From positions 496,001 through 560,000 of the forward strand of contig JAIVFI010000021.1 in assembly GCA_025558095.1 (NCBI GenBank): a stretch of 64,000 nt of DNA, given 5' to 3'. The notes beneath the pieces were generated by a model. The model ran no database searches, was not told where the DNA came from, and saw only the letters and a program-made list of their open reading frames with translations. Made by a program: the position numbers and the translations under genes. This document shows positions 11,485-58,154 of this stretch, piece after piece (the stretch's first letter is position 1; each line of letters begins with the position of its first letter). The stretch comes from Hyaloraphidium curvatum SAG 235-1 (lineage: Eukaryota > Fungi > Monoblepharomycota).

Positions 11485-13277
11485 ATGACGGACGGGGAAG
11501 TCGCGGGTGCCATCAGCGCCGCTGCACAAGCTTCGGCATTGCACGATGCCGCAACGGTCACGATGACGCCCGGTAAGCCGCACGGGTGCGGAGCCGCGCG
11601 GTTCATTACGACGCGTCCCTCGGCAGACGAAAAGTACGCGCTCATCGCCCGCAACCTGCAAGAGGTTCTTGGAGAATCGGAGATCAAGAAGGTGCTGCAG
11701 GACCGCGACTTGCGGATGTATTGGGGGACGGCTCCCACCGGTCGGCCCCACGTCGGCTACTTCGTGCCGATGGCCAAGATTGCCGACTACCTGAAGGCAC
11801 ACTGCGAGGTGCGTCCTTTGCCTTCTCGGATGTCTGGACTCATTGGACCCACGGAGATTCCAGGTCACTATCCTTCTGGCGGATATCCACGCGTACCTGG
11901 ACAACATGAAGGCGCCGTGGGAGCTGTGCCGCCTGCGGGCCGAGTACTACGAGGTCGTCATAAAGGCCATGCTGACTTCCATCGGGGTGCCCGTTGGCAA
12001 GCTCAAGTTTGTGCGCGGGACCGACTTTGAGCTCTCGAAGGAGTACACGTTGGACGTCTATCGCCTTGCCGCCATGGTATCGGTTCACGACTCGCAAAAG
12101 GCGGGCGCCGAGGTCGTGAAGCAGGTCACGTCGCCTCCGTTGAGCGGTCTGCTGTACCCGGGTCTGCAGGCGCTGGACGAGGAGTACCTGCAGGTGGATG
12201 CGCAGTTCGGGGGAGTTGACCAGAGGAAGATCTTTGTCTTTGCCGAAAAGTACCTGCCCCTCTTGGGCTACAAGAAGCGTGCCCACCTCATGAACGTCAT
12301 GCTTGCCGGTCTCACGGGAAGCAAGATGAGCGCATCGGATCCCGACTCCAAGATCGATCTGCTGGACGATGCCGAAGCCGTCAATCGGAAGTTGCGGAAG
12401 GCGTTTTGCGAGGAGGGCAACGTCACGGAGAACCCCGTTCTCGGCTTCGTCAAGATCGTGCTCCTCCCAATCAGTTCGCTCACGCACGGCGGCGAAGGGA
12501 AGTTCGTTGTCCGACGCCCGGAGAAGTTTGGGGGCGATGCGGTCTATACGGATTTCCCCACGCTCGAAGCCGATTTTGCGGCAAAGAAGCTTCACCCGCT
12601 GGATTTGAAGCAGGGTGTGGCGGACGCTCTGAACGGTCTCCTCGAACCTATTCGCAAAGCTTTCGAGGATCCGAAGCTACAGGAGTTGGTCAAGGCTGCG
12701 TATCCACCCGCCAAACCTGCTGTTCAAGGCGACATCTCAAAGCTCGGTGGGTGCCTTTGTTTTTCGCCGGATTTGGCGCTAACGCCCGGTCGTGTTAGAT
12801 GTTCGCGTCGGCCGGATTCTCGAAGCGACGCGCCACCCCGATGCCGAAACCCTTTACGTCGAGAAGATCGACCTTGGCGACGCCACGGGCCCACGGACGG
12901 TGGTTTCCGGGTTGGCAAAGTTCGTTCCGCTGGAAAGCTTGGTCGGGAAGCTCGTTGTGTGCCTTGCGAACCTCAAGCCAAGCAAGCTGAGGGGTGTGGA
13001 ATCCCAGGCCATGGTCTTGGCTGCCTCCAATTCAGATCGGACCATAGTGGAGCTCGTCGAGCCGCCGGAGGATGCTGTCCCGGGCGAGCCCGTCACTTTT
13101 GATGGGTACGAAAGGACGCCGGAACCCGTGCTGAATCCCAAGCACAAGATCTGGGAGAAGACGCAGGCACTGTTCCGGACGGGCGCAGATGGCGTGGCGA
13201 TGTTTGGCGACGTGCCTTTCAGGACGGCACAGGGTGTCTGCAGGGTCGGCTCTGTTTTCAACGGGACGATTTCGTGA
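11485..13277 (+). CDS. TYS1: Cytoplasmic tyrosyl-tRNA synthetase with C-terminal EMAPII-like tRNA-binding domain; 2 introns
   Basis: [14 protein letters not shown] (HIGH-like), [32 protein letters not shown]; C-domain LDVRVGRI...[15 protein letters not shown]...[20 protein letters not shown]. Confidence 0.96.
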
Positions 13278-13348
13278 GCGGAGGCTTCAGAGAGGAATAG
13301 AATAGTGCGCGGCGGGGTATACATCGGAATCTAGAGAAAAACTCTCTA

Positions 13349-13500
13349 GACCGGGCATAGATAGGGTATGGGTATCGAGCCGCGCCTAATTGTTGCCCAG
13401 CAACTCCCTCTTTCCCCTTTCCTCCTTCGGGGCAGAGGCAGCTGGGCGAACGTTAAGGTGTGGAAGGGGACCGAAAGGTCGGGTGGTGGTGCTCGAGGGT
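13349..13500 (-). ncRNA. Candidate Fanzor omega-RNA scaffold
   Basis: Lies immediately 3' of the Fanzor stop. Long nested stem-loop at 13392-13451 (minus strand GCCCAGC/GCTGGGC, CCTCT/AGAGG, CCCC/GGGG). Position matches the known TnpB/Fanzor guide RNA location at the element 3' end. Boundaries are inferred. Confidence 0.6.
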
Positions 13501-16500
13501 CACGGGCGCTCGAGGCCAGCAGGCCTGTCGTTTGGGTCGTAGGTGTGGTTCTGTAGCCAGCGTGCCATGGCATGCTCGAAGATGCGGAGCATGTTGATGG
13601 CAGCGTTCTGGTCTCGACCCACGCACGCCAGGTTGCAAGGCCCGTGGTAGCACCACCTTTCACCCCTGCGACGAGCAAGAGGCATCAGGATACGGCAAGG
13701 GAAGAAGCAGGAGCGCGTCCGACACGTACCACGGTTTGAACGTCGGTATCGACATCGGTGGGTGGAAGGGGGTGGGCTGCCGTCGGCGCTTGCGCTGGCT
13801 GCGGTTGTCGAGGCACCCGCGCGTGTCGAGCATCACCGTCCCGCACTTGTGGTGGGTCTTGGAAGTGCGGAACTCGTTGACCAAGATCGGGAGCACGTTG
13901 TCCCTCCTCTCGAACTCGTTCACGAACCGGCGGAGAGAAGCGCGCATGTGCCCCTTGATGTACTTCATCGATCCCGTCTTGGTCGAGCCCAACGAGATGA
14001 TGACGTGCACGGGCTTCTTGGGCGGTCCCGGGCCGTGCTCGTCGGCCATGCGCTCCCGCCGCTCCTTCCGCTTCCGCTGCTCTTTGCGCTTCCGGTTCTT
14101 GCGCTGCGTCCTCGTTAGGGCGAGCTTCGGCGTCCCGGAGACCTTCATGGCCAGCAGCTCGTCCACCATCCGGATCACGCCGATCTGCGCCCCGCGGTAG
14201 TTCTCCAGCTTGTGCCGGGCAAACTTCCACTCGAACTCGACCATCTCGTCGAGGTGCTCCAGCCGGTACTCGGCCCGCTCGCGCACGCGCTGGTAGTCCG
14301 TCTGCCGCTTCGATCCGATCCCGTTGTAGATGTCTGCCATCGAGCGGCCGGCGGGATCGTACAGCGACGTCGGGTCGCCCGGCGGCTGCTGCGTCGGCAG
14401 GTCCTGGCTGGCCTGCCAATTCCTGTTTGCGTTGCGCTGCGTGACGCCGATCTCCGACATCCAGCGCTTCGGAGAGATCGAAAAGAAACTGTACTCGGGA
14501 GTCCCGTCCGCATGGACACCGCTCGTCCGCTCCGCACAGGTCAATATGGCGCTAATGCCGGGATCGGCGCCAATCTCGCGGACCTCGATCTCGCCCGCGT
14601 CCCGTCGCTGGTAGAGCACCTCGGCCTCCTTGAGCGCGTCCACAATCATCTTGCGGTTCGCTTCGGCGGCCCTTGCCCGTCTCGCAACGTCCTCGTCCTC
14701 GTCGCTCATCCCGTCGACGGCCCGCACCTGGCTCGCGTCGTAGACGACCTTCGGCACAGCCTTCTCGAACTTTACCGAGACGGCCACGCTGTCGCTCGCG
14801 ATCGAGAAGGCAAAGGATCGAGGCACGTTCTTGTACTTGCTCTTGTCGCCGTCAGAAATGAGGTCGTTGATTTTGAACAGCCTCGGCCACGCTTCCCTCA
14901 GATGCGGCGAGGTTCGCTGGTTGACAAAGTTGCCGTGGAAGAAGGTGATCTCGAAGTCGCTGTACCGCTGCGGAAACAGCCGCTTCCACCGCTTCAGCAG
15001 CTCCCCGATGCACTGGTCGCCAGCAATGTCGATGTGCTTGGGGGTTGTCGAGTACAGGGGGAGGATCGGCGAGGTGGGCGGCTCCGGATCGTTCCAGTTT
15101 GCCGGCCGCGGATCGGGCGGCGGCCGAGGCACAAAGGAGGCCGCGATCATGTCGTTCGTCCGCCGAATGAACCGCAGAAGGCGGTTCCAGTCATCGGGCG
15201 CGCCGACCATCCCGTTGTGGACGATCTGCATGTGTCTCCGGATGGCATCAAGGATGAATGCTAGGAGCCGAGCCGTCCGCGCCGGATCCAAGGCCATCTG
15301 CGTGATGCCGCCCATCGATTGGAACTCCCACGTGCAGGCGCCGTTCGTGTTGACGAGGTTCCGGAGGCGTGCGACCGTCAGCAGTTGAGGAGAGCCCGCG
15401 ATGCCAATCTGGACCGAGTTCTCGATCTGGTGCGCCTGATTGTAGGTCCCCGTAATGTGGCGCATCAGCTTCTCCACCTCCCCCTTCCTGTCGTTCCGGA
15501 ACTGCTTTTGGACGGTCGGCAGAATATCCGTTAGCGTCTCCTCGAACCAGAGCTTGTACTCTCCCTCTTTCGCGACGTAGAGGGACCTGTAGCGGGCGAC
15601 GAGTTGGAGAATCTCTCGGATCAGGGGCACGGGCAGCAGAAAACGCCGTCCACGCCGCATTCCTGGCGTCTTGTACTGGTACTCGATCGGCGGGGGCTTT
15701 GGTGATAGCCTCCATCTCCCGCTCCTTCGTTCCCGCCGAACGAGTAGATCCGAAGCTCCTTGCGGCGCGAGTGGGCTGCGGTGTAGCAGCTGTCGCGGAG
15801 GGCTGTGAGCCTCGTCTTCGGCAGCGCGACCGGTTGTCCATGCCCGTCTTCCGCCACTTCATCGTCGTCCAGGTCGAGGTCAGCGCCCGCCGCCGGAGCG
15901 CCTCCTTCCGCCTGCGCCGGTTGTCCCTGCGCGGCCTGTGACTGCGCGTTCCCCGGGTCCTCCTGCCCCTGTTGGGCCTCCGGCTGCTGTGCGGGCGCGG
16001 GAAGCCTCGGAAGCTCCGTCACCGTCTGCCACTGCAGTAGCGCAAAGTCCTGCTCGAAAGCGGTCTTGAAGTTGCGGTTGCACGCGCCCTTGAGGTACAG
16101 GTCGATGTTGTTCTCGTACTGTTTGTACGAGGAGTTGAAGATCTGCGAGCACTCTCCCGAAAAAAAGCTAGGGACCATGCGGTAGGGCAGATTCTCTCCA
16201 TCCTCGGCCTCGTTGACCGGGGCCGCGTAAAAGACGGGATACGAGAACCTGAGGCCGTCCTCGTAGGCGTCTTCGTGCTCCTCGTCCGTCGCAATCAGCA
16301 GCTCCTTGACGGCCGTGTTCCGAACGATCGACGCGTCCGCCCGCTGCTTGCCGAGCCAGATCCTGATCGAGTGCACGAGGAAGGGCAACTGGGCCGCCAG
16401 TGAGGGCGAGCGGATCACGCGGAGCTCGCCCGTGACGACGAGCATCAGGATGCGGAACAGCAGCGTCTGGTCGAGCGCGGGAAGCCTCTTGTCCCAGTCC

Positions 16501-17778
16501 AGCCAGAGCGTGACCGCGTTCTCCAACAGCCAGCACGCGGCCGCGCCACACTTGGTGAATTCGTCGGCAAAGGAACGGAAGACGGGAATCAAAGAAAGGT
16601 CGGCGCAGAGTGACTCCATGGAGGTCTTGATCGTGCTCATCAAGGTCTTGACGTTCTCAATTCCCGCGGCCTCGGCCTTCTCCAACGTCTCCTTCTTGCC
16701 GGCTGCACGCGCCGACGGCTTGTGATTGGGGCACAACAGACTGTTGCTTCGCTGGTGATCCGTGCGACCGCACGACGGGCACGGCTTCACCGGAACTGCA
16801 GGCTGTTGAGCGGCGGGCGGCGGCTGCGCGGCAGGGGCAGCGGGCGGCGGACCTGCAGGCTGCGCAAGGCCTTGCGGCGGGGAAGGAGCGCTTTGGTGCT
16901 GCAGGTGGGGGGGGATTGGAAGACCAGGCGGGGGCCCGATGGCCCCACGGGTCGGAGGTTGCCCGAGATGAGCAGGAACAGGTAGTCCTGGGGCATGCCG
17001 TCGAGCGGGAGGGGGTTGCTGCGAATAGGAAGCAGATTCAGGATGATTCGCGGGCTTGCAGTACAGGCCACTTCACCAGAGGCACGTCGTCACTCGGCTC
17101 CCTCTTCCTTCTCGACCGACCTCCGGCGAAGCCTCCTTGCTCGTCATCCATCATCTGCAGACGAAGAACGTGAGAAAATGCGAAAGAAAGGAGAACTTCA
17201 CACGCACCTGGTCCGAGTCGCCACCGTTCAGTCCGTCAAAAGCTTCCCCCATCTCTTCGTCCAGAACCCGTCCGTCCTGCGGCTCGAAATCAGATCGGGG
17301 TGCCAATGCAACCCGACTCCATGTTACTCGCCGGCATCGTCGCTCTGTCCGACGGACTTGCGCCCTCCGGAGCTGCTCCGCGACGAGACGCCAGATCTGG
17401 GACAAAATGAGCAGAGGAAAGCCAGAGTTTGCAGACCAACGCATACTCTGTCCACGACCCCTTGGACCCCGTGTGGTCTGCCGTGCAGGAGGCGATGCGG
17501 CGATGGCAGGCATCGGCGCCGGAGCTCCTTGCTGGGCGACGCGGCCCCGGGTCGCGCCACGACGGGCAGCCCAGCCACCGCGACCCCCGCGGGCGCCTGC
17601 TGAGATCTCTGGATGATTTCCGATGCCCGCCGCATCCGGAGTTGCTTCCGCCGCGGCTTGGGGGGGACCCTGCGCGGCGTCGTCGGCCGCGTCCGCGCCC
17701 TCTGGCTGCTCGGGGCGCTGCCGCACTGCTGTTGCCACCCGCCGGCGTGGCGGCGTCCGCTCGCTTCCGCGGTGGCAT
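13500..17778 (-). CDS. Fanzor1 (eukaryotic TnpB-family RNA-guided endonuclease), intron-containing, with long N-terminal extension; frameshift near 15690-15735
   Basis: RuvC-I EIGADPG; RuvC-II LVNEFRTSKTHHKCG; after splicing intron 13666-13729 (GT..AG), KPWGERWCYHGPC...GRDQNAAINM (RuvC-III). Upstream: SIASDSVAVSVKF, N-terminal knuckle CPSCGRTDHQRSNSLLCPNH, and introns 17019-17076 and 17155-17207. Exons 5' of 17276 are uncertain. Confidence 0.9.
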
Positions 17779-19456
17779 TGTTGTTGCAGTATCGTGACGT
17801 CGGTGATGATTGCGTAGTCCGAGCACCAACCCAGCGCGGGTGATGTGACGCGCAGGCCCTTTCAGCTCCAAACCGGTGCGACGGCGCGCAAAGTGCCGCG
17901 CAACAGCTCCACAACCGCCCGCCGCTAGGCTTGGCCTCCCTGCTCTCCCTAGTTGCCAGGGGTTCACCAGCCCGTGACCGGGGGTCCGCCACGCTCGGAC
18001 CGGCGAGCGGGATCGGACTCCGCGTCCCCGCGAAAGCTCCCTGCACCGCTACATAGAGGCTGGGAGATCGAACGCCAAGGAACTCGCCCTCGATTCCGCT
18101 CTTCTTTCGATTCGGCTGCCAGCTCCGAGGGGATTCCCACCAGACCTTCGCCGCATTGTCCTCGCGCCGGCGGATGCCAGCGCGGCTCCAGATACCCGCG
18201 GGCAAAGTAATTTGTCCTTTGAGCTCCTGAGGAGGATAGCCGCGACCACGGGACCTCCGTTGCTTCCAATGTTTCGGCGAGGCAAGACGGTCAAGCAACC
18301 AACCGATGCGGTGCGGGATCCTCAGCACTGGCCCCTGAACGGCCGAAATCCTCTTGGAATCGTTTTTCATCGCGCCATACTGGGAGCTCGGCCACGTTTC
18401 TGCGGAATGCCTGCGGTGGCAGGTCGCGGAAGGAACTTCCATGGTTCGACGGTGCCGCGGGGCTTCGGCCGTCATATCGGCGGTGATCGGGCGCAAAAAG
18501 GAGCCGCGCCGTCGGCATCGCCTTCCAAGATGCGTTTGGCGCCGTCTAGGTGCCATTTCAACGGAGATGCGTTTGCAGGTTGAGGTGCTTCGTGAGCGTG
18601 TTCGTGGGGGCGGTCGGCGAAGTCAAAATCAAACATCAGAAGTCGCCGGTTTCCGATCTCTTCATGTACGGCCAGGCCAATGCATCTGGAGAAACTAGCA
18701 TGGGCCCATACTTTGGACATATTGTCTTCAGAACCCCCGTGGCCCGAGTCGCGTCGTCTCGTTCCGATCCGACGGTTGGACGCCAACTTCAAGCTATAGC
18801 AGGTCAACGACCGACTGCTGCACCTTCGATTCGCATTCTTGTGACGCCGGGAGCACGTATGGCAAAGAGTCAGTACAGATAAGCAGGGCGCGTGCGTCGA
18901 ACGCTTCGAACGATGCCCGGAGCGGGCAGGAAAAATCCGCAAGCGGCTCAGAAAGACGTGCTTCAGGATACCACCTCAAGCATGCAATGCAGCCATCATT
19001 CCGTCCGCGTTCCAGACTTGTTTGGTCACGATCGTCGCAAGAGTGGGTCGCGGGGCCCGTAGCCTAGTCCGCAGCAGCCCGATGGCCTCCCCCGACGGTG
19101 CCGCCGACGACAAGGAACATCACGGGCACAGTTGTGTTGCAGTCTCGCCACCAACTTCCACGATGCTTCTTACATTGCATGTGAGACCGCCGCAGCAAGA
19201 GGGAACCCTCACAAGGTCCAAATCAGAGGCTGCCATGCAGGCACTGGAAGACAGCTTGGCCAATGGAGACAGAGACAAAGCTGCGGGGCCGCCACCCTTT
19301 GAGATTCAGTCAGCAATGAGACGCTTTGGCACTGGCTCCCGCTGCAATAAGACAGGGCGAATGGTTGTTGCGTGTCCGAGATTCGTCCAAGATTCGGAGG
19401 TAAGGCGGATGGCTGTGGTCCGACTCCACGTTGGGTCCATAACCATACTATGAGGA

Positions 19457-19655
19457 CACTACCACCCGGTCTACGGCCGCTTCTGGTCCACGGCCACTGT
19501 GGAGGGTCTACCGTCGCCGCGAATGGTCCATGGGACCTTGCCATGGTCTACTGCGGACTCCGGTGGTCTGCCAAACCCGCAACGGTTTGCGACTGCGCGA
19601 ACGGTTCACGGATACCCCAAATGGTCTACGGCGATGCGCAGGTGGTCCACGGCCG
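19457..19655 (+). mobile_element. CACTA/EnSpm-like terminus with array of GGTC(T/C)AC-type subterminal motifs at ~20-bp spacing; solo end
   Basis: CACTA at 19457-19461, then motif copies starting at 19468, 19485, 19505, 19525, 19545, 19565, 19584, 19603, 19623 and 19644. Confidence 0.5.
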
Positions 19656-19965
19656 TTTCCGATTCATGCCCGGAATTCAAGAGCACAAACGGGGTTTGTA
19701 CAAACGGAATGCCATCCCACGCCGGCCGCCGCAAGCGCTACATGTTGCCCTCTCTTCCGGAAGGCTTGCAAACAAATCGGCAGCGTCGAGGTCGGCTAAA
19801 GCTCCTGGGTGCGCTATTCGCCTAGGCCAGTTGTAGGCGCGCGGGCGGCTAGACTCCGATTTCTAACGCTAGCCACTAAACGGGGGCAGCAGCGCGCCCG
19901 ATCATGCGTGCGTCGGCAAAACAGCACGTCCTTTCTGCCTCCCCATCTCCGTTTCTGCTTCACCG

Positions 19966-39008: not shown

Positions 39009-41642
39009 CAGTACTGAATTACAAAGATGAGCGGGAGCTTCAACTCGCCACCCCACACACAATTTTAATGCTATGGATTTGCCGTTTCGTGAGCTACAAG
39101 ATGTAGGCAGCGCCCTGCTTTTCCGGGATTTTTGGCCCTTATCTGTGGTGGGAAGCGTTTCGGCGTGGGGCGCCAAGTTGAAGTTAGATTCGGGGTTAAA
39201 GAAATTTAACCACAGCTAAGGCCTGAAAATCGGCCAGGATCCAGTTCTCCTAACAAATAGTCTAACCCGTGGGGTCCCGGGCCTTCGCTCACGCGTGCCC
39301 GGCCCCAAATCGGCCGCAATTGGAGGCACTCCACCGCCGCGATGGCCGAAGGTCGCGGCTGGATAGCTGCCGCCGTGGCCGGCGGGATCGTTTTGGCCGT
39401 CTTCGTGGTGCTCTTTGGCATGGTCGCCGGTGTCGGCCGTGGTCGGGATGGCCGCGGAAGGTTCTCCCTGGGGGACACCTCGACGAGCACCACGACCGCC
39501 CTCCGCCAATCACCGGTCACGAAACGGCGCAAGACCGCTGATGGGCTTGCACTGGAAGATGGAGCAGCTTTTGTTGAGCAGCGGCGCGCTCGAGCCGCGG
39601 AGAACACCCCCGGCGGGGAGAACGAGGCCGAGGGCCGCGGGACGCGACGTGCGGCATCCCAGCTCAATGTGGACGGCTACAAGGACGTTTCTGGCTCTGG
39701 AGAGCGTCTGTGCACCCACTGTAAGGAGAAAGGACATTACATCACGACGTGCCCAAAGCGGCAGAGGTGCAGACAGTGCCAGGGCAAAGGCCACGCGAAG
39801 AACTACTGTCCCGAGCTGTACCCCGGTCTTCTCAGGTTCGGGAGGCTTCTGACCGTCGAGGAGAATATCAGAATGCTCGGCATCCCCGAAGTGCTAAACA
39901 GGAAGCCCGGAGAACCGCTGTCATACGACCTCCGGAAAGCATACCTCCGGATTCTATACCACCAGAAGGCCATGGGAGTCGGTGATCCAGTCAAAAAGGT
40001 TGCGCAGATGGTTGGGGCCTCGGAAGGGACCATCAGGCAGCTGTACAACGAGTTTGAAAGGAGCGGCAAGGTGGCCTTGTGGGCGGACCGCAGATCTGAT
40101 CGAACCTTCAACACGACGACGGAATGGAACGCATTTGTCATCGACTACGTCAGCAAACAGCACAGGGCAATGTGCCGTGTCCGTACCAAGAAGCTACAGA
40201 AGGAAATGGTGCGGGAATTCAACCGATTCTTCAGTCTTCGATACGTGCGTGCCCTCTGCAAGCGCCTGGGCTTCGGATACAAGGAGATTGGAGGCCACAA
40301 GATCGTTGTCATGACTCCAAACATCCATGTGCGGCGGTATGAGTACCTGCGAGAGCGGTACCGGATTCGCAAAGCGGAGAAGGAGCCCGACAAGAAAGTC
40401 GTCTCGGTAAGTCCCTCCCTCGCTGCTGTTCTGAGCTCCCGCTGACTCTTCACCCCAGTACTGGCTCGATGAATCGTACGTCCATCAAAATCACGTCAGC
40501 AACTTTACCTGGTATCGTCCCGGCGATGAGGTTCCCCACCCGGACGGGTACGGAAAGCGGTGGTGCATCATCGGCTGTGGATCGAGATACGGATGGCTCG
40601 AGCCTCCCAAAGTGTTCCAGGGCGATCATAAGCTGGCGGATTACCACGGATCCATGAATGCGAGGCACTTTGAAGAGTGGGCTCGGGGTGCATTTCGGAA
40701 GATGCGCGAAAAGGACCCGGAGGGCGAGATCCACGTACACATGGACAATGCTGCGTACCACATTGCACCTGTGGAGGGTCAGAAACGGATCTCGCAGCTG
40801 ACCAAGAAGGCAGATCTCGCCAAGGCCATCATGGACATGGGCACGACTCCGTACACAATGGAGCAGCTCACGGCGCGCAAAACGAAGACTGGAGGCGGCT
40901 TTACCGTCAAGGACCTTCGCAAGCTGCTGCAGGAGCTCGGATACCAGCCGGAACGCTTCATTGACAAGCTGGCACTCGAGTTCGACATCTACCTCCACTT
41001 CCTTCCCCCGTACCACCCCAAACTGAACCCCATCGAGCTTGCGTGGGCCCGCGCAAAGAACCGCGTTGCTGAGAACAACGAGTCGCGCAAGTTTGCCGAC
41101 GTCAAGGTCCTTCTGGAGGAGGGGTTTGCGCTGGTGGATGCTGCCGCATGGGAGAGGCTCGTCATTCATGCTGAGAAGGAAGAGGACGAGTACCGCCGCC
41201 AGGATGCAACCATGGTCATTCACATTGACGATGACGATGAGGAGGAGGCAGCTCTGGTGCCGCCGGAGCCTCGCAGTCGCTCTTTTCGGACCGCAGAGAT
41301 GGTCGTCGACAACGAGCTCGAGAGCGATGCGGACGATTCTGGGGACGCCGTCCAGCCCATTCCCGACGAGGACGATGAAGATGAAAGCGACGGATTGGCT
41401 GTGACGGTCCAGGAAGCGCTGGACGAGGAGTTTGACGCGGAGGTCGCTCTAGCGCTGGCAATGAACGCCGACGCCTGGGCCGAAATCCAAGCCGGGCGAA
41501 ACCCCAGCCCCACTGCCGTGCAGGCGGCTCTATTGGACGCGTCTCTGTAGATTTTCTAGGCGAAAACGATGTAATTGGTGTGTGGGGAACGAGACGAAGT
41601 TGTGTTTGGAAGTTTGCCGCTCAAGTACCCCGCACCGGACTG
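39009..41642 (+). mobile_element. IS630/Tc1/mariner DNA transposon, Sailor-like (DD96E), apparently full length
   Basis: TA|CAGT at 39007-39012 and ACTG|TA at 41639-41644. Both ends read CAGT-N16-GAGCGG...CTTC...CCCCACACAC..AATT inward (imperfect TIRs) and enclose a transposase gene. Confidence 0.85.
39342..41550 (+). CDS. DDE transposase (~718 aa) with two CCHC zinc knuckles and an HTH; one intron at 40407-40458
   Basis: CTHCKEKGHYITTC, CRQCQGKGHAKNYC; WLDESY (D1), DYHGSMN, MDNAAYH (D2), LPPYHPKLNPIE (E). Splicing the GT..AG intron gives an uninterrupted frame. Confidence 0.92.
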
Positions 41643-50966: not shown

Positions 50967-52908
50967 TTGATGGAGTCTGCGGCAGCAACAGTGGCGCAGG
51001 CTTTGTCCGGGAGCGCCGCAAAGAGGGTTACTCGCACCTCCACCGTCTTCGTCGACTCCTCCGGCACGGTGGAGCCCACGGCACCGGACGTCGGAACGGG
51101 CTCCGCACCGACGCAAGTAGTAACAGTCATTTATGTGACTCGCACCAGAACGACGGAGGAGACGGCGGATTCGGGGACCTCCCTGCCTGCATCGCCGACT
51201 CCGTGCACAAACTATGTTTGCCCAAACGACTGCGATGATTGGTCCTGCTACGAGGACAATTTGGCACAAGCCGGGTCGGCGACCACCGGACCGGATGGAA
51301 CGAGGACGCGGATTGCCGCCGAAACCATCACACCCGCGCAGTGCACGGGATACGTCCGTTGCGTGGACTACAAGTGCAGTCACAACGAAACGTTTTCGTA
51401 CGACCTTGCCCGTAAGTGACCGTTGTTGCGATGTGGTGGCGGACGTTGAGGGTCGACCGTATGCAGTTCTTTGGAGAGATGTTTGCGGCCAGCCTCTTGA
51501 TGCAGCGCGCGTGCGGCAGTACCCGCGCCCGTTGCCGCCGGTCGTGATCAAGGCGACGACCAGTTCCCGCATGCCCACCACCTCGAGCATTCCGGCGTCC
51601 ACCACGACAGTCGCACCTGTGCAGACTACCACCAAGCGGACCACAACAAGCCTGACAACGTCTGCTCCCGGCGAGACCACGTCCCGCCCTGCGACGACAG
51701 GATTGCCTCCGCCTCCAGCTGCAGCTGCGCAAGAGGGACTCGGTGCGGCCGTCATCGTGCCTATAGTCGTCGCCCTGATTGTCACCTGCGTGGCTGCGGT
51801 CATCGGTGGTATCCTTGCGTGCCGCAAGTGGAAAGCGCGGGTGTACAAGACGGCCGCCGCCATGGCCAACTCCAAGGAGCTGCCACCGATGTCGCCCAAC
51901 GAGAACGGTTATCCGGTTGCGCCTGCCGCAGCGTTCGCCGTCCCGGAGTACAGGGAGTATGCTTTTCCAGACCACGTGTCGGTGTCGTCAGCGCGGAGCC
52001 CGACCACGGCCCAGACGGGAACGACCGTGCCGCTTCCGCACGGCCGCGATATCACCTCGGAAGACGTTCGCATGGCCATGGAGGCGGCCAAGGCAACGCC
52101 GCGAGCCGTGCGGGCCCCAAGTTCGGTCGCCTCTTCGAAGAGATCTTCGGTCGCGGGGTCCCTGCGAGAGTCCCTGCACCACCCGCAGGCAATGCATTAC
52201 GCCGCGGGCTTTCCTGCGAGCCCTTCGGCCGCGTGGGGCCTCGACGGGGAGTCGAGGAGGCCGAGGGGAAGGAGCAGGGCACCTTCGCTTGCCGGATCGA
52301 GCGAGAGCGGATTCACGGCCGACTACCCCGCCAGCCCTGCCGTAGGTTTCGCCTGCATGGCTTGCGTGCATGCACCCCGACGAATCTGACGCGGCTGCCG
52401 ACAGTCCACCCGAGTTCGGTCCCCTGCGGTCTACTCGCCGGTACCCGCCGAGCACGCATACATCTCCCCGAAGGCCGACCGATCGTCTCGCGCCGACCTC
52501 TACTACGCAACTCCGAGGGATAGGAGGTCCCGCGCGGACGGCATGGCAAGCCCCAGGGGCGATCGCGGCGGGAGCGGATACAGCTCGCCGCGCCTGCCCG
52601 AAGGCTTCCTCCCCCAGGAGGCGATGGACGCGAGGGCGGCGCAGCTCGCGGCGGAGGCGCTCCAAGGGTACTACTCGCCAGCGCCGCGGCTTCCGACCAG
52701 CCGCCGCGCGCATGCTTCCGGCTACGCCAGCCCGCGGCCCGACGAGCGGAGCTCGGACAGCGATCTCGAGCGCGAGAGGCCGAGGGACCGGGAGCGGCGC
52801 AAGCGGCGGAGCCGGGCGGACCTCCTTTCCGACACGGACTTGATCGGGAGCTACAGCATGCCGCTGGGCGGCCGGGGAACCGATGGGAGCACGGGGGGCT
52901 ACTATTGA
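50967..52908 (+). CDS. Type I membrane protein: Cys-rich and Thr-rich ectodomain, one TM, Ser/Arg-rich cytoplasmic tail (Mid2/Wsc-like architecture)
   Basis: CTNYVCPNDCDDWSC...CVDYKC; Thr-rich stalk; TM AAVIVPIVVALIVTCVAAVIGGILAC followed by RKWKAR; three exons. Confidence 0.6.
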
Positions 52909-52976
52909 CGGGCGCGAACGAAGCCCGCGTGATTGCTTGAACAATAGATTGCATGTCAAAACCCCATCACCACCAT

Positions 52977-54834
52977 CTACTCCTCCTCCGGCGGTATCAG
53001 GCCCATGCGCTTGAGCACCGAGTACCTGATGCGCCTCGCCAGCTGGTGCGATAAGCGCCGGATCAGCGCGGACCCTGCGCGTGCCTCGAATCACCCACCC
53101 TCGTCTGAGGGTCCAGGTCCTCGTCTTCCTCGTCGCGCCTGCGGCCGGCCAGCTTGCGCTTCCTCGCGAGCGCGCCGGGAACCTCGTCCTCGTCCGTCTC
53201 GTCGCCCCTCTTTTCCGCGGCGGCCGCGCCCGGGTTGAGCCGCATCTGCGCCATGCGCTCGCGCTCCTGCTGGTTGACCCAGGGCGCGCAGGAGGGGCAC
53301 GGGCACAGCCGGTAGTCCGGGAGCCGCTTGGCCTTGCCCGGCGCGGGCTCGGGGTTGGCGCCCGGCGTGGCCGGCGCGCCGGGAGTGCCCGGTCTTCCGG
53401 GGGTGCCGGGATCGGCCGGCGTGCCTGGGTCGGCGGGCTTTGCAGGGACCTTGAAGGGCGAGTCGTTCGGGGTCGGGGTGCCGGGCCCGGTGGCACCTGC
53501 GTCGGCTGCGGCTGCCTCGGGTGCGGGGAGTTCCGGCGCTTCTTCTTCGTCGGGGCTGTCGAAGGCCGGGGGCCCGGTGGTCTCGCGCGGCGTCTCGCCC
53601 CTGGCGACCTTCATGTCGTAGTCGGTGACGTAGAGGAACATGGCGTGCACGAGGAACTCTGCGGCGGACTTGAACTTGCGGCCCGAGGGGTGCTGGGAAG
53701 GGGAAGAGCGATCTGTCAGCGTCGGCATCGCGGTCGGGGCTGCGCAGGAACACTTGCCCCGACGAGGACCGTGTCGCTGCGCCACGAGACGATGCGCTGG
53801 CCCGGGGGCGGACCCTGGCGCTGGCCCGGCGCGGGCGTCTGTGCCGGCGAGCCTTGTGCCGACGGAACCTGGGCCGGGGAGCCCTGGGCCGAAGACGGGG
53901 GCCCCGCGGGGTCTGCGCCGTCGAGCGACGCATTGTCTGCGCCGGCATCGCCCTCGCCGCCTTCGCCGCCATCCGCCGGCTCGCCGCCGTCCGCGCCCTC
54001 GCCGCCGGCGACCGAGTCCGTCTCGGTCCTGTTTTCGTCGCCCTCGTCCGCCGCGGCCGGGAACGCGGCGGCCGGGAACGCGGCGGCCGGGAACGCGGCG
54101 GCCGGGAACGCGGCGCCCGCTCCCGCGTGCCCGGCTCCAACGCCAGCGGCCCCCCCGCGCCCCGCCGGCCTGCGGCCGCGCACGGCTGCGTACTGCGGCC
54201 GCCTGTGCAGGTACAGTGTGTAGCCCTCGGGAAAGTCTGGCAGCGCGGGCGCCAGCAGCGGGTTGAGCGACGGCCCAGCGGCGACGGCCGACGGCTGCGG
54301 CGGGGCGAACGCGCCGATGCCGCCCGAGTTGCGCGACGAGCGGCCGGAGCGCAGGCCGAGGTCGCGGGCGTCGGGCACGGCGGCGGGGCGTGCGGCTGCG
54401 CCGGGCAGCCTGCGCGCCGACTCCCTGCGCAGCGTGTGCAGCTGGGCGCGCAGCTGCGCGACGGTCTTGGGCGCGCCGTCGCGGCAGCGCAGGTTCTCGC
54501 TGACGGTGCGCAGCCAGCGCTGGTGGATGGGGCTGTCCCGCCCGAGCCGTACGTACTCGACCCCGCCCTGTCCCACCGGGACAACCCCGTTGCCGTCCGA
54601 CCAGCCGGGCGCGTCGAGCGGGGGAAACGCCCTCAGGCCGGTCGACCCGGCCGGCCCGCCGCGCCGCAGCGAGAGCTCCCTCGGCGGCGGCAGATTGTGC
54701 GCCGAGATGCGCGGGGCGCGCGTCTTCTGCGGGGGCTGCGCGGCGGGCGCCGCCTGCCCCGCCTGCCCCGCCTGCCCCGCCTCGCCCGCGGGCAGCTGTT
54801 CGCCCCCTGTGTCCTGCTCGCCCTGCGCGTCCAT
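52977..54834 (-). CDS. Cryptic loci regulator 2 (Clr2) N-terminal-domain protein
   Basis: HQRWLRTVSE; LPDFPEGYTLYLHRR; RSDTVLVG|HPSGRKFKSAAEFLVHAMFL; CPCPSC. Matches the Clr2 transcription-silencing N-domain motif series. Confidence 0.75.
54056..54115. repeat. Coding minisatellite, 4 x 15 bp (gccgggaacgcggcg), encoding AAFPA repeats in the Clr2-like gene
   Basis: Read directly from the sequence. Confidence 0.9.
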
Positions 54835-54928
54835 GGAAATGGGGGGGGGCGCGTCCATTCCTTTCGTTGTCCAAAATGCGGCGCGCGCGGCCCGTGGGAC
54901 ACTTGTACCACCCCGCGCTATTTGCGAA

Positions 54929-56239
54929 ATGCGTCTGCCCGGCGTGAGCGCGTCGGTTGCGGCGCCGGCGGCCGTGGCGCTGCTGGTCGCCGCGGCACTG
55001 ATGCTGCCGCACGCCGGGCCGGACCTCCCCGGCCCCGCATCGCCGCCGCGGCCAAACTGCCCCGCGTGCCCGCCCCCGGCATGCGCGCCCCCGGCATGCG
55101 CGCCCCCGGCATGCCCGCCCCGTCGCTGCCCCGCCGTCCAGCGGCATCCGTGGGGTGCGCAGCTCGACGGCGATCTGGACCCCTTCGTCGACGGCATCAC
55201 GCGCGGCATGCTGGACGGCATCGCGGCAATGAACCTGCCCGCGGTGACACGCTACGTGATCGTCAACGACACCGTGTACACCGATCCGCCCACGGCGGGC
55301 CTCGAGTGGACGCCGTGGACGCCGCTCCTGCTCCTGCGCGCCTTCTGCTCGCACCCGCTGCCGGACGCCGAGCTTTTCGTCTCGTCGCACGACTCGCCCC
55401 TGATTGCCCGCGACGGCCCCAGGCTGCCGCTCGTCTCCTTCACCAAGACGGCCGCGCACTGGGACATCCTGCGCCCCTACGACTCGCTGCTGTGGTGGCC
55501 CGAGGACCAGCCGCGCCGGGCCTGGGACGCCAAGGCGCCCCGGGCGTACTGGCGCGGCTCCACCACCGGGGGACCCTACGTGGCCGGCGCGTGGCGCTCC
55601 ATTCCGCGGGCGAGACTTGTCCTGGCCTGCCGCGCGCTGAAGGACCTGTGCGACGCCGAGTTCACTGGCATCGTCCAGGCGGACGCGGCGGCCGCGCTCG
55701 AGATGCACGCCGAGCTCGGGAACGTTTCCGAAACAGCGCCGCCGTTCGGCCACCTTGCGTACAAGTACGCCGTCATCGTGGACGGCAACACGGGTGTGGC
55801 CAGCCGCTCCGCACGCTTCCTCGCCGGAGGTTCCGCCCTCCTTTGGCAGCAGACCCCGTACGCGGAATTCTTCTATTCTCTTCTGCGCCCCTGGGTGCAC
55901 TACATCCCGCTCGAGCACAACCTCACGGACCTTGAGGACAAGATACTGTGGGCCAGGGCCAACGACGGCTACGCAAGGCAGGTCGCCGAGCAGGGGCGGG
56001 CGCACGCGGAGCGATACCTCGCCCCGCGGGTCGTGGATGCGTACTGGGCCGACCTGCTGCAGCGCTACGCCCGCCTGCAGCGGTTTGACGTGCGGCTGCC
56101 GGGCAACTGGACGGGCAACCGGCTCGTGCTCGGGAAGCTGCTGCCCACGTTTGTCAGTAGGTTCCCGCGGTGCAGGAAGCGCGCGCGGGCGCAGGACCCG
56201 GACAACCCGCTCTGGGAGAAGCTCGGGCGGGACGAATGA
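54929..56239 (+). CDS. Glycosyltransferase family 90 (CAP10/POGLUT-like), type II membrane, intronless
   Basis: N-terminal TM and Cys/Pro stem; AYWRGSTTGG, YKYAVIVDGN, EFFYSLLRPWVHYIP, DLEDKILWARAND. Confidence 0.9.
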   Translation: MRLPGVSASVAAPAAVALLVAAALMLPHAGPDLPGPASPPRPNCPACPPPACAPPACAPPACPPRRCPAVQRHPWGAQLDGDLDPFVDGITRGMLDGIAAMNLPAVTRYVIVNDTVYTDPPTAGLEWTPWTPLLLLRAFCSHPLPDAELFVSSHDSPLIARDGPRLPLVSFTKTAAHWDILRPYDSLLWWPEDQPRRAWDAKAPRAYWRGSTTGGPYVAGAWRSIPRARLVLACRALKDLCDAEFTGIVQADAAAALEMHAELGNVSETAPPFGHLAYKYAVIVDGNTGVASRSARFLAGGSALLWQQTPYAEFFYSLLRPWVHYIPLEHNLTDLEDKILWARANDGYARQVAEQGRAHAERYLAPRVVDAYWADLLQRYARLQRFDVRLPGNWTGNRLVLGKLLPTFVSRFPRCRKRARAQDPDNPLWEKLGRDE

Positions 56240-56403
56240 ATGGCGGCTCTCGCGGGGTGAGTAGCTTTCGGTCACTTTGCGGCTAGGGCGGAGGGCGACG
56301 TCGCACTGGCCGGAAGGAATAATTTCTATAGCCCAAATAAGTTTACACCGAATCAAAACCATGGACCAGTCCAATGCACGGAGCTGGCAAGCAATGACGC
56401 TTC

Positions 56404-58043
56404 TTAGACGCCGTTCAAGTGCTTGATCGAGCTGCTGCGGCGTAGCATCGTGGCCGAGTACTTCGGCACAACGCGGGCCGGGTGCGGCACGAGGACGTGC
56501 TCGATGTCGCCCCACCACTTGTCCGAGTGCTTCTTGTACCAAGCGACTGAGGCGGGTCGATTAGGAAAGGGCGGTCCGGACGCGTGTACGCCAACTTACT
56601 GGTTCGCTCCAGCCCCTCTTCCCACTCGATCCTCGGCTTCCACCCGAGCTGCTCCAGCTTGTTCGAGTCCACGGCATAACGGCGGTCGTTGAAGGCGCGG
56701 TCCTCGACGTACTCGAGGTACTGCTCCTCCTTGTCGGCGAACCCGAACTTGGACACCAGGGTCTTGGCGAGCTCGAGGTTCGTGATCTCAAAGTCGGTGC
56801 CAATGTTGTAGATCTCGCCGACCTCGCCCTTGTGGAGGATGGTGTCGATCGCGTCCGCAACATCCGAGGCAAAGATGTAGCGGCGCGAGTTGCTGCCGTT
56901 GCCGTGCAGGCAGCTGTCCGCAGAAAAGGCGTTAGCCAGCATCGCACTGAGCCCCGCGGGGTCACACGCACACTTTCTTGCCGCGCTTGAGCAGGCAGAC
57001 GAACTTCGGGATGACCTTCTCCGGGTACTGGTACGGCCCGTAGACGTTGTTGCTGCGGGTGATGATGACCGGGAGGTTGAACGACTTGGAGTAGGCCTTA
57101 ACGAGCATCTCGGCGGCCGCCTTGGAGGCCGAGTAGGGGTTGGTGGGCTGCAGGACGGCCTCCTCGAGCAGGTTGCTGTCGGCCTCGCCGTACACCTCGT
57201 CCGTGCTGATGTGGATCATCTTCTTGATGTTCTGCAGGCGCGCCGCTTCCAAGAGGACGTGCGTCCCCACGACGTTGTTCTTGGTGAACTCGAACGAGTC
57301 GCCGAAGGAGTTGTCTGGTCGCACGGGCGTCAAGCAAGGGCGGGACGAGGAATGAACCGGTCCTGCTCACCGACGTGGCTCTGAGCGGCAAAGTGGATGA
57401 TAGTGTCGATGTTTTTCTGCTGCAGAACGTAGAGCACGAGGTCGACCGACGTGATATCGCCCTTGGGACCGCGGGAGTCCCGTCAATGCTGCTAGGGTGC
57501 CGTCGAGCGGCCCGCGGCGCACCTTGACGAACGAAAAGTTCGGCAGCGATTCCAGGCTGCGGCAGTTGTTGAGCGACGCGCAGTAGTCGAGCTTGTCGAA
57601 GCTTGTGATATTGTACTCTGGGTAGAGGAGCGCGAACTTGCGCACGGCGTACGAGGCACTGGCGGGGGACAGCAGGGCAGTTTAGCGACACCATCGCATT
57701 TAGATCCAGCGGCCAGAAGCCTTGGAAGGCACGCCCGCGACGCGGGGCAGACTGTCGGCGACACCCGCATTGTTTGGCCAACGTCGCTCTGCGCCACGCG
57801 GGAGCCTGTGCGCGCCTCCGCGCGCCGCGACAAACGCCGCAACCTGCATGCCACTCACATGAAGCCCGCCCCGCCGGTAATGAGCACGTTCTTGACGTTT
57901 GGGTCCGCGGGGTAGCGGCGCAGGCCGACGTTTCGTGCCTCTGGGTCGAACTCCCACTCCTGGTTGAGCTCCTCGCTGTGGGGCAGACGCGGCGTGTGGC
58001 CGGGCTCCCAGTGGCTGTCGCCGAACGTCTTGACGGCGGCCAT
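56404..58043 (-). CDS. NDP(UDP/dTDP)-glucose 4,6-dehydratase (RmlB/TGDS-like), multi-exon
   Basis: VLITGGAGF, DKLDYCASL, HFAAQSHVDNSFGDS, HISTDEVYGE, PTNPYSASKAAAEM, NNVYGPYQYPEKVIPKF, DRAFNDRRY. Confidence 0.95.
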
Positions 58044-58154
58044 GGTGTGAGTTTGGATTCAACACTGGTGGCTGGGCGCGGGACGCGCGTGCGGCCGTCA
58101 ATCACTCGGGGACGGGTGTCCCCGTGTCCCAGCCTTAACCCTTCTCGTCGAACG

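Follow-up and report, generated by a model that had tools for sequence, protein, structure and literature searches.

A probable long-form Fanzor1 gene, broken in one copy, in a transposon-like element of the fungus Hyaloraphidium curvatum

Fanzors are eukaryotic RNA-guided nucleases under development for genome editing. Can such an enzyme be encoded at about twice its usual size? The question is raised by a 64,000-nucleotide stretch of DNA (the window; C21:496001-560000) from the 31.9-Mb, 55-contig assembly of Hyaloraphidium curvatum, a monoblepharid (zoosporic) fungus, in which an earlier note had pieced together a giant, intron-containing Fanzor1 gene from several open reading frames (ORFs). 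Here, we report that this gene is in all likelihood a long-form Fanzor1, housed in an element of known type and broken in this copy. The enzyme class has already been described, as has the arrangement of a Fanzor1 gene alone in an element with terminal inverted repeats (TIRs) and TA flanks; what is new is the size of the protein and the architecture of its REC lobe. Our literature search found no paper naming Fanzor together with Hyaloraphidium.

The minus strand of the window holds ORFs of 666 amino acids (aa; 15660-13660), 389 aa (16790-15621) and 61 aa (13685-13500). GADPG (14557-14571) and VNEFRTSK lie in the 666-aa ORF and GRDQNAAIN (13593-13619) in the 61-aa ORF, and the three acidic residues of the RuvC triad, which the earlier note had called intact, were located as D366 (codon 14563-14565), E596 (codon 13873-13875, within VNEFRTSK) and D662 (codon 13611-13613), all on the minus strand. 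Excision of a 64-nt intron running from 13729 to 13666 (GTACGT...GCAG) joins ...TFKPW to GERWCYHGPC... in frame. Exactly the same splice is used in the public NCBI model P0001, a 698-aa ‘hypothetical protein DFJ74DRAFT_225113 [Hyaloraphidium curvatum]’, and the 64-nt skip recurs in a spliced contig from a public run (X1), both in agreement with the intron as first proposed. Its position, within the same tryptophan codon, is kept in a second family of the same genome (family 2, 33% identical to family 1 of the window), where the intron measures 60-61 nt, and also in a metagenomic relative, L021.

Contigs from the public run show skips of 64, 58, 53, 55 and 50 nt, all with minus-strand splice ends, making five introns; four of these are upstream, where at least two had been foreseen. 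Each small 5′ exon, translated singly, is open in one frame, and candidate start codons lie at 17513, 17337 and 17154, any of which may be taken as the coding start of the gene. A CCHC knuckle (CPSCGRTDHQRSNSLLCPNH, 16722-16781), Pro/Gln-rich tracts and a basic tract are present upstream of or between the RuvC motifs, where the earlier note had placed them; the basic tract is at most a putative nuclear localisation signal. Taken together, the contigs of this run, which we guess to be RNA, point to a real spliced gene and to expression of the family in spliced form.

Searches and structure predictions were run on single exons and on the public spliced model P0001. A word-based homolog search returned just H. 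curvatum’s own models and one relative. A profile built from both families (A2) and run against 1.84 billion representative proteins gave 263 matches at E ≤ 1e-3, among them full-length long relatives (941-1082 aa) and many proteins in the range 600-750 aa; canonical-length proteins were reached at E-values from 1e-16 to 1e-5. PF07282 was found in 49 of 58 selected matches, from which a joint profile (A3) was made. This profile matched SpuFz1 (E 4.9e-65), GtFz1 (1.4e-55) and PpFz1 (1.4e-47), then mimivirus Fanzor2 (5.7e-14) and TnpB (3e-6), with Cas12f after that, and its alignment puts the columns of D366, E596 and D662 on the DP, DEYKTS and NRD motifs of SpuFz1, the catalytic residues of which are D383, E541 and D606 (PMC11423790). 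Long and ordinary-length relatives, aligned with hhalign, matched with a probability of 100 and an E-value of 2.8e-68.

Fanzor1 proteins have been described by the motif D-X(125,275)-[TS]-[TS]-X-X-[C4 zinc finger]-X(5,50)-RD (Bao & Jurka, 2013, PMC3627910), and P0001 follows it with D366, 232 residues to T599-S600, the ligands H603/C606 and C649/C654, and R661-D662. They also have a rearranged RuvC site, in which Gly or Pro replaces the canonical RuvC-II glutamate and the catalytic glutamate lies ~45 residues downstream (PMC10530073). Here, E596 in VNEFRTS aligns with the glutamate of DEYKTS in SpuFz1, the canonical RuvC-II position is Gly, and a strand ~40 residues upstream (IISLGST) aligns with FGD of the profile consensus. 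The complete catalytic triad, like the set of zinc ligands, has been retained in both families and also in distant relatives.

The seven top Foldseek matches of the AlphaFold2 model of P0001 (mean predicted local distance difference test score, pLDDT, 81.7; predicted template modelling score 0.73) were all Fanzor1 structures (E 6e-10 to 8e-7), which together with the transitive profile match to SpuFz1 bears out the proposed Fanzor1 homology. VIA-align Z-scores were 16.2 for SpuFz, 13.6 for PpFz, 10.6 for GtFz and 10.7 for TnpB; Cas12j and Cas12o reached 12-12.7 over the RuvC half only. A second model, of residues 100-700 of the intact protein encoded on contig C7 (pLDDT 84.5), found no significant Foldseek match in PDB, and in a VIA-align comparison with 48,161 chains its lone standout was the N-terminal lobe of GtFz1 (Z 9.1; next-best 5.3), with 204 residues aligned at a root-mean-square deviation of 3.6 Å and 525 model residues spanned against 243 in the chain. 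The predicted fold is thus that of a Fanzor1, with REC, WED, RuvC and TNB parts.

The best structural match, SpuFz1 from Spizellomyces punctatus (PDB 8GKH, 9CEU-9CEZ; Z 16.2 over 382 residues, Foldseek E 6e-10), shares the WED-RuvC-zinc-ribbon order, the triad columns and a zoosporic fungal host. It differs in sequence (13-18% identity) and in length, at ~640 aa against ~1,200-1,265 aa here: the H. curvatum protein has a REC insertion of ~280-290 aa and a CCHC knuckle that does not align to SpuFz1 (the profile alignment begins past the knuckle), a long basic helix before the strand following RuvC-I, and His as the first zinc ligand. GtFz1 from Guillardia theta (PDB 9CER) is the sole standout for the N-terminal 600 aa, but the 243 residues of its aligned span are spread over 525 here, and no known fold was recognised in the inserted part. 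The core formed by RuvC and zinc ribbon is common to ISDra2 TnpB and Cas12f too (Z 10.7-11.7 over model residues ~350-698; profile E 3e-6 and weaker); unlike the present gene, these two are prokaryotic and intronless, with 400-500 aa and a much smaller REC lobe, and their glutamate occupies the canonical RuvC-II position, where Gly stands here and the glutamate is found beside TS (‘rearranged’, PMC10530073).

Family 1 is present in the genome in three copies (window, C7 and C15), with protein identities of 96-97% and DNA identities of 94-95%, and family 2 in four; there is one fragment besides. Intact copies, for which the earlier note had advised a genome-wide search, were found at C7:~330-334 kb and C15:~535-539 kb: their ORFs of 1162 and 1148 aa (L002 and L003) run unbroken from the Pro-rich N-terminus via the CCHC knuckle to the KPW splice site, with a continuous main exon of ~1,116 codons. 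The predicted proteins have ~1,197-1,264 aa, depending on the start codon (exons counted separately), and family 2 has a 989-aa ORF plus the last exon. Set against a mean Fanzor size of 620 aa (PMC10530073), family 1, with ~1,200-1,265 aa, is roughly twice as large.

Near 15707 and 15691, stretches of 8 nt and 26 nt kept in both paralogs are missing from the window copy. Since this 34-nt deletion is specific to one copy, the break between the 389-aa and 666-aa ORFs is a frameshift and not an intron, as had been supposed; an intron at this 15.6-kb junction was rejected because both paralogs have the 8 + 26 nt in a continuous frame. After the deletion, the N-terminal frame hits a stop at 15621-15623, and the NCBI model begins anew at the ATG at 15660. 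With its frame shifted in this way, the window copy as sequenced cannot encode the giant protein and would yield truncated products at best. The doubled size therefore stands for the family and falls for the copy in which it was noticed. The NCBI annotation represents the truncated product of this broken copy, taken from the part downstream of the lesion; the full-length C7 and C15 genes had no match in a protein database search and so may be unannotated. Substitutions between the family 1 copies pile up at third codon positions, and the ratio of non-synonymous to synonymous divergence (dN/dS) is 0.22-0.30 at a dS of 0.06-0.09, which indicates purifying selection. On the same contig, ~64 kb beyond the locus, lies an isolated fragment with 82% identity to residues 384-444 of the window protein (L008; G000:C21:577333-577515).

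Where does the extra length lie? The earlier note had expected both additional N-terminal domains and insertions, and it is the insertions that are borne out. By hhalign, the main insertion occupies ~residues 360-650 of the C7 protein, ~280-290 aa within the REC lobe, and the extra mass consists mainly of this insertion and of low-complexity tracts, not of new N-terminal domains. Relatives of 600-750 aa have the CCHC knuckle as well, which hence is not specific to the long form. In the model, a Gln/Pro-rich disordered stretch is followed by a well-predicted alpha/beta-plus-helical module without a recognisable known fold, and the insertion is kept in all long relatives. An ESM-Atlas feature search with L002 residues 425-660, the part past the low-complexity tract, gave only a sub-0.9 lead, DUF8286, which was not confirmed by Pfam and was rejected.

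Six long proteins group together (support 99) when the shared columns are analysed with FastTree, in line with the distinct long subfamily proposed earlier. This group branches beside a group of 640-740-aa proteins, the join having moderate support (86), and further long proteins stand elsewhere in the tree. Judged by these sequences, there is a long-form clade of Fanzor1 proteins of 940-1,265 aa. The relatives are single ORFs on eukaryotic metagenome contigs, with two genes in tandem in one case. These two long-clade genes (L019 and L021, from ENA metagenome contigs; 1079 aa, and 963 aa plus last exon) are ~750 nt apart; the second has an intron at the same KPW codon, and the first reads through there with 27 extra in-frame residues.

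In the window, the gene is the sole gene of a 6.57-kb element at 13305-19876; it lies on the minus strand and has at least six exons. The parts of the element and its flanks, in plus-strand order, are as follows.

13303-13304, no strand: TA dinucleotide on the gene’s 3′ side, a putative TA target-site duplication; the likeness of the three copies starts at TAGTGCGCGG, and TA flanks occur in family 2 too.
13305-13336, minus strand: TIR at the gene’s 3′ end; the plus strand reads GTGCGCGGCGGGGTATACATCGGAATCTAGAG, aligned to the reverse complement of the other end.
13305-13502, minus strand: stretch from stop codon to element end, 198 nt, a candidate omega-RNA scaffold by inferred role; 98% identity across the three copies.
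13503-13665, minus strand: last exon, with the second half of the zinc ribbon (C649, C654), RuvC-III and the C-terminus; stop codon at 13500-13502.
13666-13729, minus strand: 64-nt GT-AG intron, phase 2, inside a Trp codon; seen in NCBI model P0001 and as a contig joint, position conserved.
13730-17018, minus strand: main exon, encoding in order the Pro-rich tract, CCHC knuckle, expanded REC lobe, WED, RuvC-I, basic helix (~14047-14112), RuvC-II and first half of the zinc ribbon (H603, C606); based on ORFs in the window, unbroken frames in L002 and L003, structure models and dN/dS.
15621-15707, minus strand: lesion of the window copy, with 8 nt and 26 nt missing at ~15707 and ~15691 relative to C7 and C15.
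17019-17076, minus strand: 58-nt GT-AG intron with ends GTGAAG..GCAG; contig joint.
17077-17154, minus strand: small exon encoding MMDDEQGGFAGGRSRRKREPSDDVPL; open frame.
17155-17207, minus strand: 53-nt GT-AG intron; contig joint.
17208-17276, minus strand: small exon encoding DGRVLDEEMGEAFDGLNGGDSDQ; open frame.
17277-17331, minus strand: 55-nt intron, best read as GC-AG (GCGAGT..GCAG); joint 17275 to 17331 with two ambiguous letters.
17332-17396, minus strand: small exon, open in frame, with a candidate ATG at 17335-17337.
17397-17446, minus strand: 50-nt GT-AG intron; contig joint.
17447-17513, minus strand: most upstream in-frame exon part, with a candidate ATG at 17511-17513; contig depth drops upstream of ~17430.
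17514-19844, minus strand: 5′ non-coding part of the element (promoter, leader); no codon-position bias, Pfam empty, and a GGTCYACGG-like cluster.
19845-19876, minus strand: TIR at the gene’s 5′ end; the reverse complement reads GTGGCTAGCGTTAGAAATCGGAGTCTAGCC.
19877-19878, no strand: TA dinucleotide on the gene’s 5′ side.

The three copies are alike from TAGTGCGCGG (13303) to ~19876 in the window and C7; the C15 copy is 5′-truncated, and the C7 copy is without ~380 bp internally. The TIRs are imperfect and escaped a generic scan of the element for inverted repeats; they were found by comparison with the ends of family 2 and then assessed by shuffling: the family 1 ends match at ~19 of 26 positions, a score equalled by one of 2000 shuffles, and the termini of the ~6.9-kb family 2 element at 20 of 24 (none of 2000 shuffles as good), with flanks that are mostly TA. 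The ends of the two families resemble each other, with TIR motif pairs inverted at the family 2 ends, and have the form GT(G/C)C...AAATCGGA. The 3′ TIR of the window copy, itself similar to a family 2 terminus, takes in part of a hairpin with an 8-bp stem (TCTAGAGA/TCTCTAGA). In the window copy both ends are flanked by TA, as are most of the family 2 ends; the 5′ end of the C7 copy reads CCACAC and then TA. Identity between copies is lower (86-93%) in the 2.3-kb non-coding part upstream of the gene.

There is no transposase in the element: a transposase or second gene at 17.5-19.8 kb was considered and rejected, as substitutions there show no codon-position bias and Pfam is empty. None of 38 DDE_3 matches in the genome coincides with a TIR-motif hit, and a genome search with PF01359 (mariner) returned nothing, as it did in control genomes, hence it is uninformative. 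With no TIR-matched transposase to go by, the assignment to a superfamily comes from the TIRs and TA flanks, which identify the element, from its sequence, as a putative Tc1/mariner-style non-autonomous DNA transposon with imperfect TIRs, TA flanks and no transposase. Elements in which a Fanzor1 gene stands alone, bounded by Mariner TIRs and TA target-site duplications, have been described (PMC3627910). Mariner-type elements such as PUl-4 (Bao & Jurka, 2013, PMC3627910) are alike in carrying a Fanzor1 gene only, between TIRs and TA flanks; the present element differs from them in that its TIRs are imperfect, a matching autonomous Mariner was not found in this genome, and a 2.3-kb 5′ non-coding region with a subterminal motif cluster is present.

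That cluster of GGTCYACGG-like motifs, which may be protein-binding sites, lies at ~19450-19660, 230-410 bp inside the 5′ TIR, with a spacing of ~17-21 nt. Four of the five exact GGTCYACGG matches in the window fall within it; it is present in C15 and partly deleted in C7, and Tandem Repeats Finder did not call it. Also in the non-coding 5′ region, a contig joint at 18771-18822 (a 50-nt skip with non-canonical AC..GC ends) may be a deletion variant of another copy and not splicing. In a family 2 element on contig C2, upstream of its Fanzor gene (L013, 7411-8901), lies an ORF of 496 aa, possibly a passenger gene, whose product would have hydrophobic, membrane-like segments; across the four copies compared, a third-codon-position excess (18/7/4) is seen in one 250-nt window only.

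Among the neighbours of the element, a plus-strand gene at 11843-13277 reads, from its translation alone, like a tyrosyl-tRNA synthetase with an EMAP-II-like C-terminus, and it stops 25 nt short of the element. From this upstream neighbour, a plus-strand contig of 1885 nt extends into the element up to 13544, so that the 3′ untranslated region of the neighbour’s mRNA would overlap the last Fanzor exon in antisense. Within that exon, a joint at 13540-13630 on the plus strand (an 89-nt skip with plus-strand GT..AG ends; depth 29.5 against ~1,900 locally) may reflect splicing of the antisense read-through transcript. Farther off, at 39342-41550 on the plus strand, lies a Tc1/mariner-type DDE_3 transposase gene with two CCHC knuckles in its N-terminal part (CTHCKEKGHYITTC, CRQCQGKGHAKNYC); it has copies on C22, C41 and C28, and no TIR like that of the Fanzor element was seen at this gene. 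The G+C content of the window rises to 0.72-0.75 at 52000-60000, compared with ~0.58 in the rest.

How would such a protein be guided? Shared with relatives of 25-38% protein identity are a ATTAGGCGCG box, a hairpin (with a variable stem sequence), GTATAC and a GCACTA terminus. An omega-RNA overlapping the terminal repeat has been described (PMC10530073), and the conserved 3′ motifs fit an omega-RNA that runs across the terminal repeat; they fit transposase-binding sites equally well. Of five 5′ flanks, four end in TTA, which makes a TA- or TTA-like target-adjacent motif (TAM) a reasonable guess; the TAM of GtFz1, TTAA (PMC11423790), is similar. In the mechanism that we infer from the example of Fanzor1 enzymes already characterised, a long Fanzor1 protein (N-terminal CCHC knuckle, REC lobe with the ~280-290-aa insertion, WED, then RuvC with D366, E596 of xEFxTS and D662, and an H/C-C-C-C zinc ribbon) would bind an omega-RNA made from the 3′ end of the element. 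Extending across the terminal repeat and on into the flank, this RNA would guide RuvC cleavage of matching DNA beside a short TAM, probably TA- or TTA-like.

A number of results count against reading the locus as a long-form, RNA-guided Fanzor1, and the alternatives draw on them. Direct searches of PDB fail, with no phmmer matches to PDB sequences for the 666-aa ORF or P0001 and only chance matches for the family-only profile A2 (to phiX capsid, E 0.13), so that the sequence link to Fanzor1 is transitive. Pfam and NCBIfam scans gave nothing but a sub-threshold PF07282 on P0001 (17.9 bits, cut-off 26.3), and the first zinc ligand is His and not Cys in family 1 and in the relative P0004 (it is Cys in family 2). 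With an identity to solved Fanzor1 proteins of just 12-18%, and with several Cas12 and TnpB structures also at Z 10-12.7 over the RuvC half, the gene could be a TnpB- or Cas12-like RuvC protein outside Fanzor1, be it a Fanzor2, a giant-virus-derived gene or an unrelated RuvC fold. We consider this very improbable, as Fanzor1 structures top both structure searches and cover the N-terminal lobe too, profile E-values run from 1e-47 to 5e-65 for Fanzor1 against 6e-14 for mimivirus Fanzor2 and 3e-6 for TnpB, the glutamate sits at the Fanzor-type xEFxTS position, and the gene has spliceosomal introns and lies in a eukaryotic TIR element. The two ORFs in different frames in the window, together with an NCBI annotation that covers the 698-aa C-terminal part alone, could instead mean that the knuckle-REC part and the RuvC part belong to different genes and that there is no giant protein. 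That would be more surprising still: one ORF spans the junction in C7, C15 and family 2 (989 aa) and, from other organisms, in P0004 (1079 aa), P0007 (984 aa) and P0010 (1082 aa), the frame break is a 34-nt deletion peculiar to the window copy, and what the upstream part matches in GtFz1 is the N-terminal lobe of one and the same enzyme. The separate upstream transcript that the earlier note had allowed for is likewise contradicted by the continuous ORFs of C7 and C15.

Other results bear on activity and mobility. For the 3′ region, the fold z-score is −2.3 in family 1 and −0.2 in family 2, the consensus fold of four relatives is weak (−1.95 kcal/mol), and Rfam gave no hit in the window and none for this region. 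Some Fanzor1 proteins, such as CrFNuc, bound RNA without cleaving in vitro, and one intron-containing Fanzor1 that was tested did not cleave in vitro (PMC10530073). The 5′ truncation of C15 and the 2-nt different terminus of C7 leave the TA duplication putative, and no autonomous partner with matching TIRs was found in the genome. As for expression, the RNA status of run X1 is a guess, and its data were kept as contigs placed at ≥90% likeness, which may stem from any one of the three copies. A domesticated or degenerating Fanzor1 derivative, without RNA-guided cleavage, perhaps an RNA- or DNA-binding regulator, and copied by segmental duplication, would accommodate the weak folds and the missing partner, as well as an element without a transposase, copy numbers of just three and four, and a dN/dS of ~0.25 that is also compatible with host-level selection. 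Such a derivative nevertheless strikes us as improbable, since the triad and zinc ligands are intact in both families and in distant relatives, copies at unrelated loci have common sharp ends, inverted repeats and TA flanks, and the 3′-terminal motifs are kept across relatives of 25-38% protein identity. A long-form Fanzor1 in a transposon-like element remains our preferred reading.

Expansion of the REC lobe is a route from TnpB to Cas12. The REC insertion, the CCHC knuckle and the basic helix might mean that eukaryotic Fanzor1 enlarged its nucleic-acid-recognition lobe independently, in the manner of Cas12, a tentative idea about which we are more doubtful than hopeful. The small REC lobe of Fanzor1 has been linked to a heteroduplex of at most 15 bp (Xu et al., PMC11423790); if the idea is true, the enlarged lobe might lengthen the guide-target heteroduplex or bring a new activity (engaging chromatin or RNA, for instance) that the usual Fanzor1 proteins of ~620 aa do not have. 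The long-form clade makes it testable whether REC expansion also occurred in eukaryotes and whether it alters guide length, specificity and TAM.

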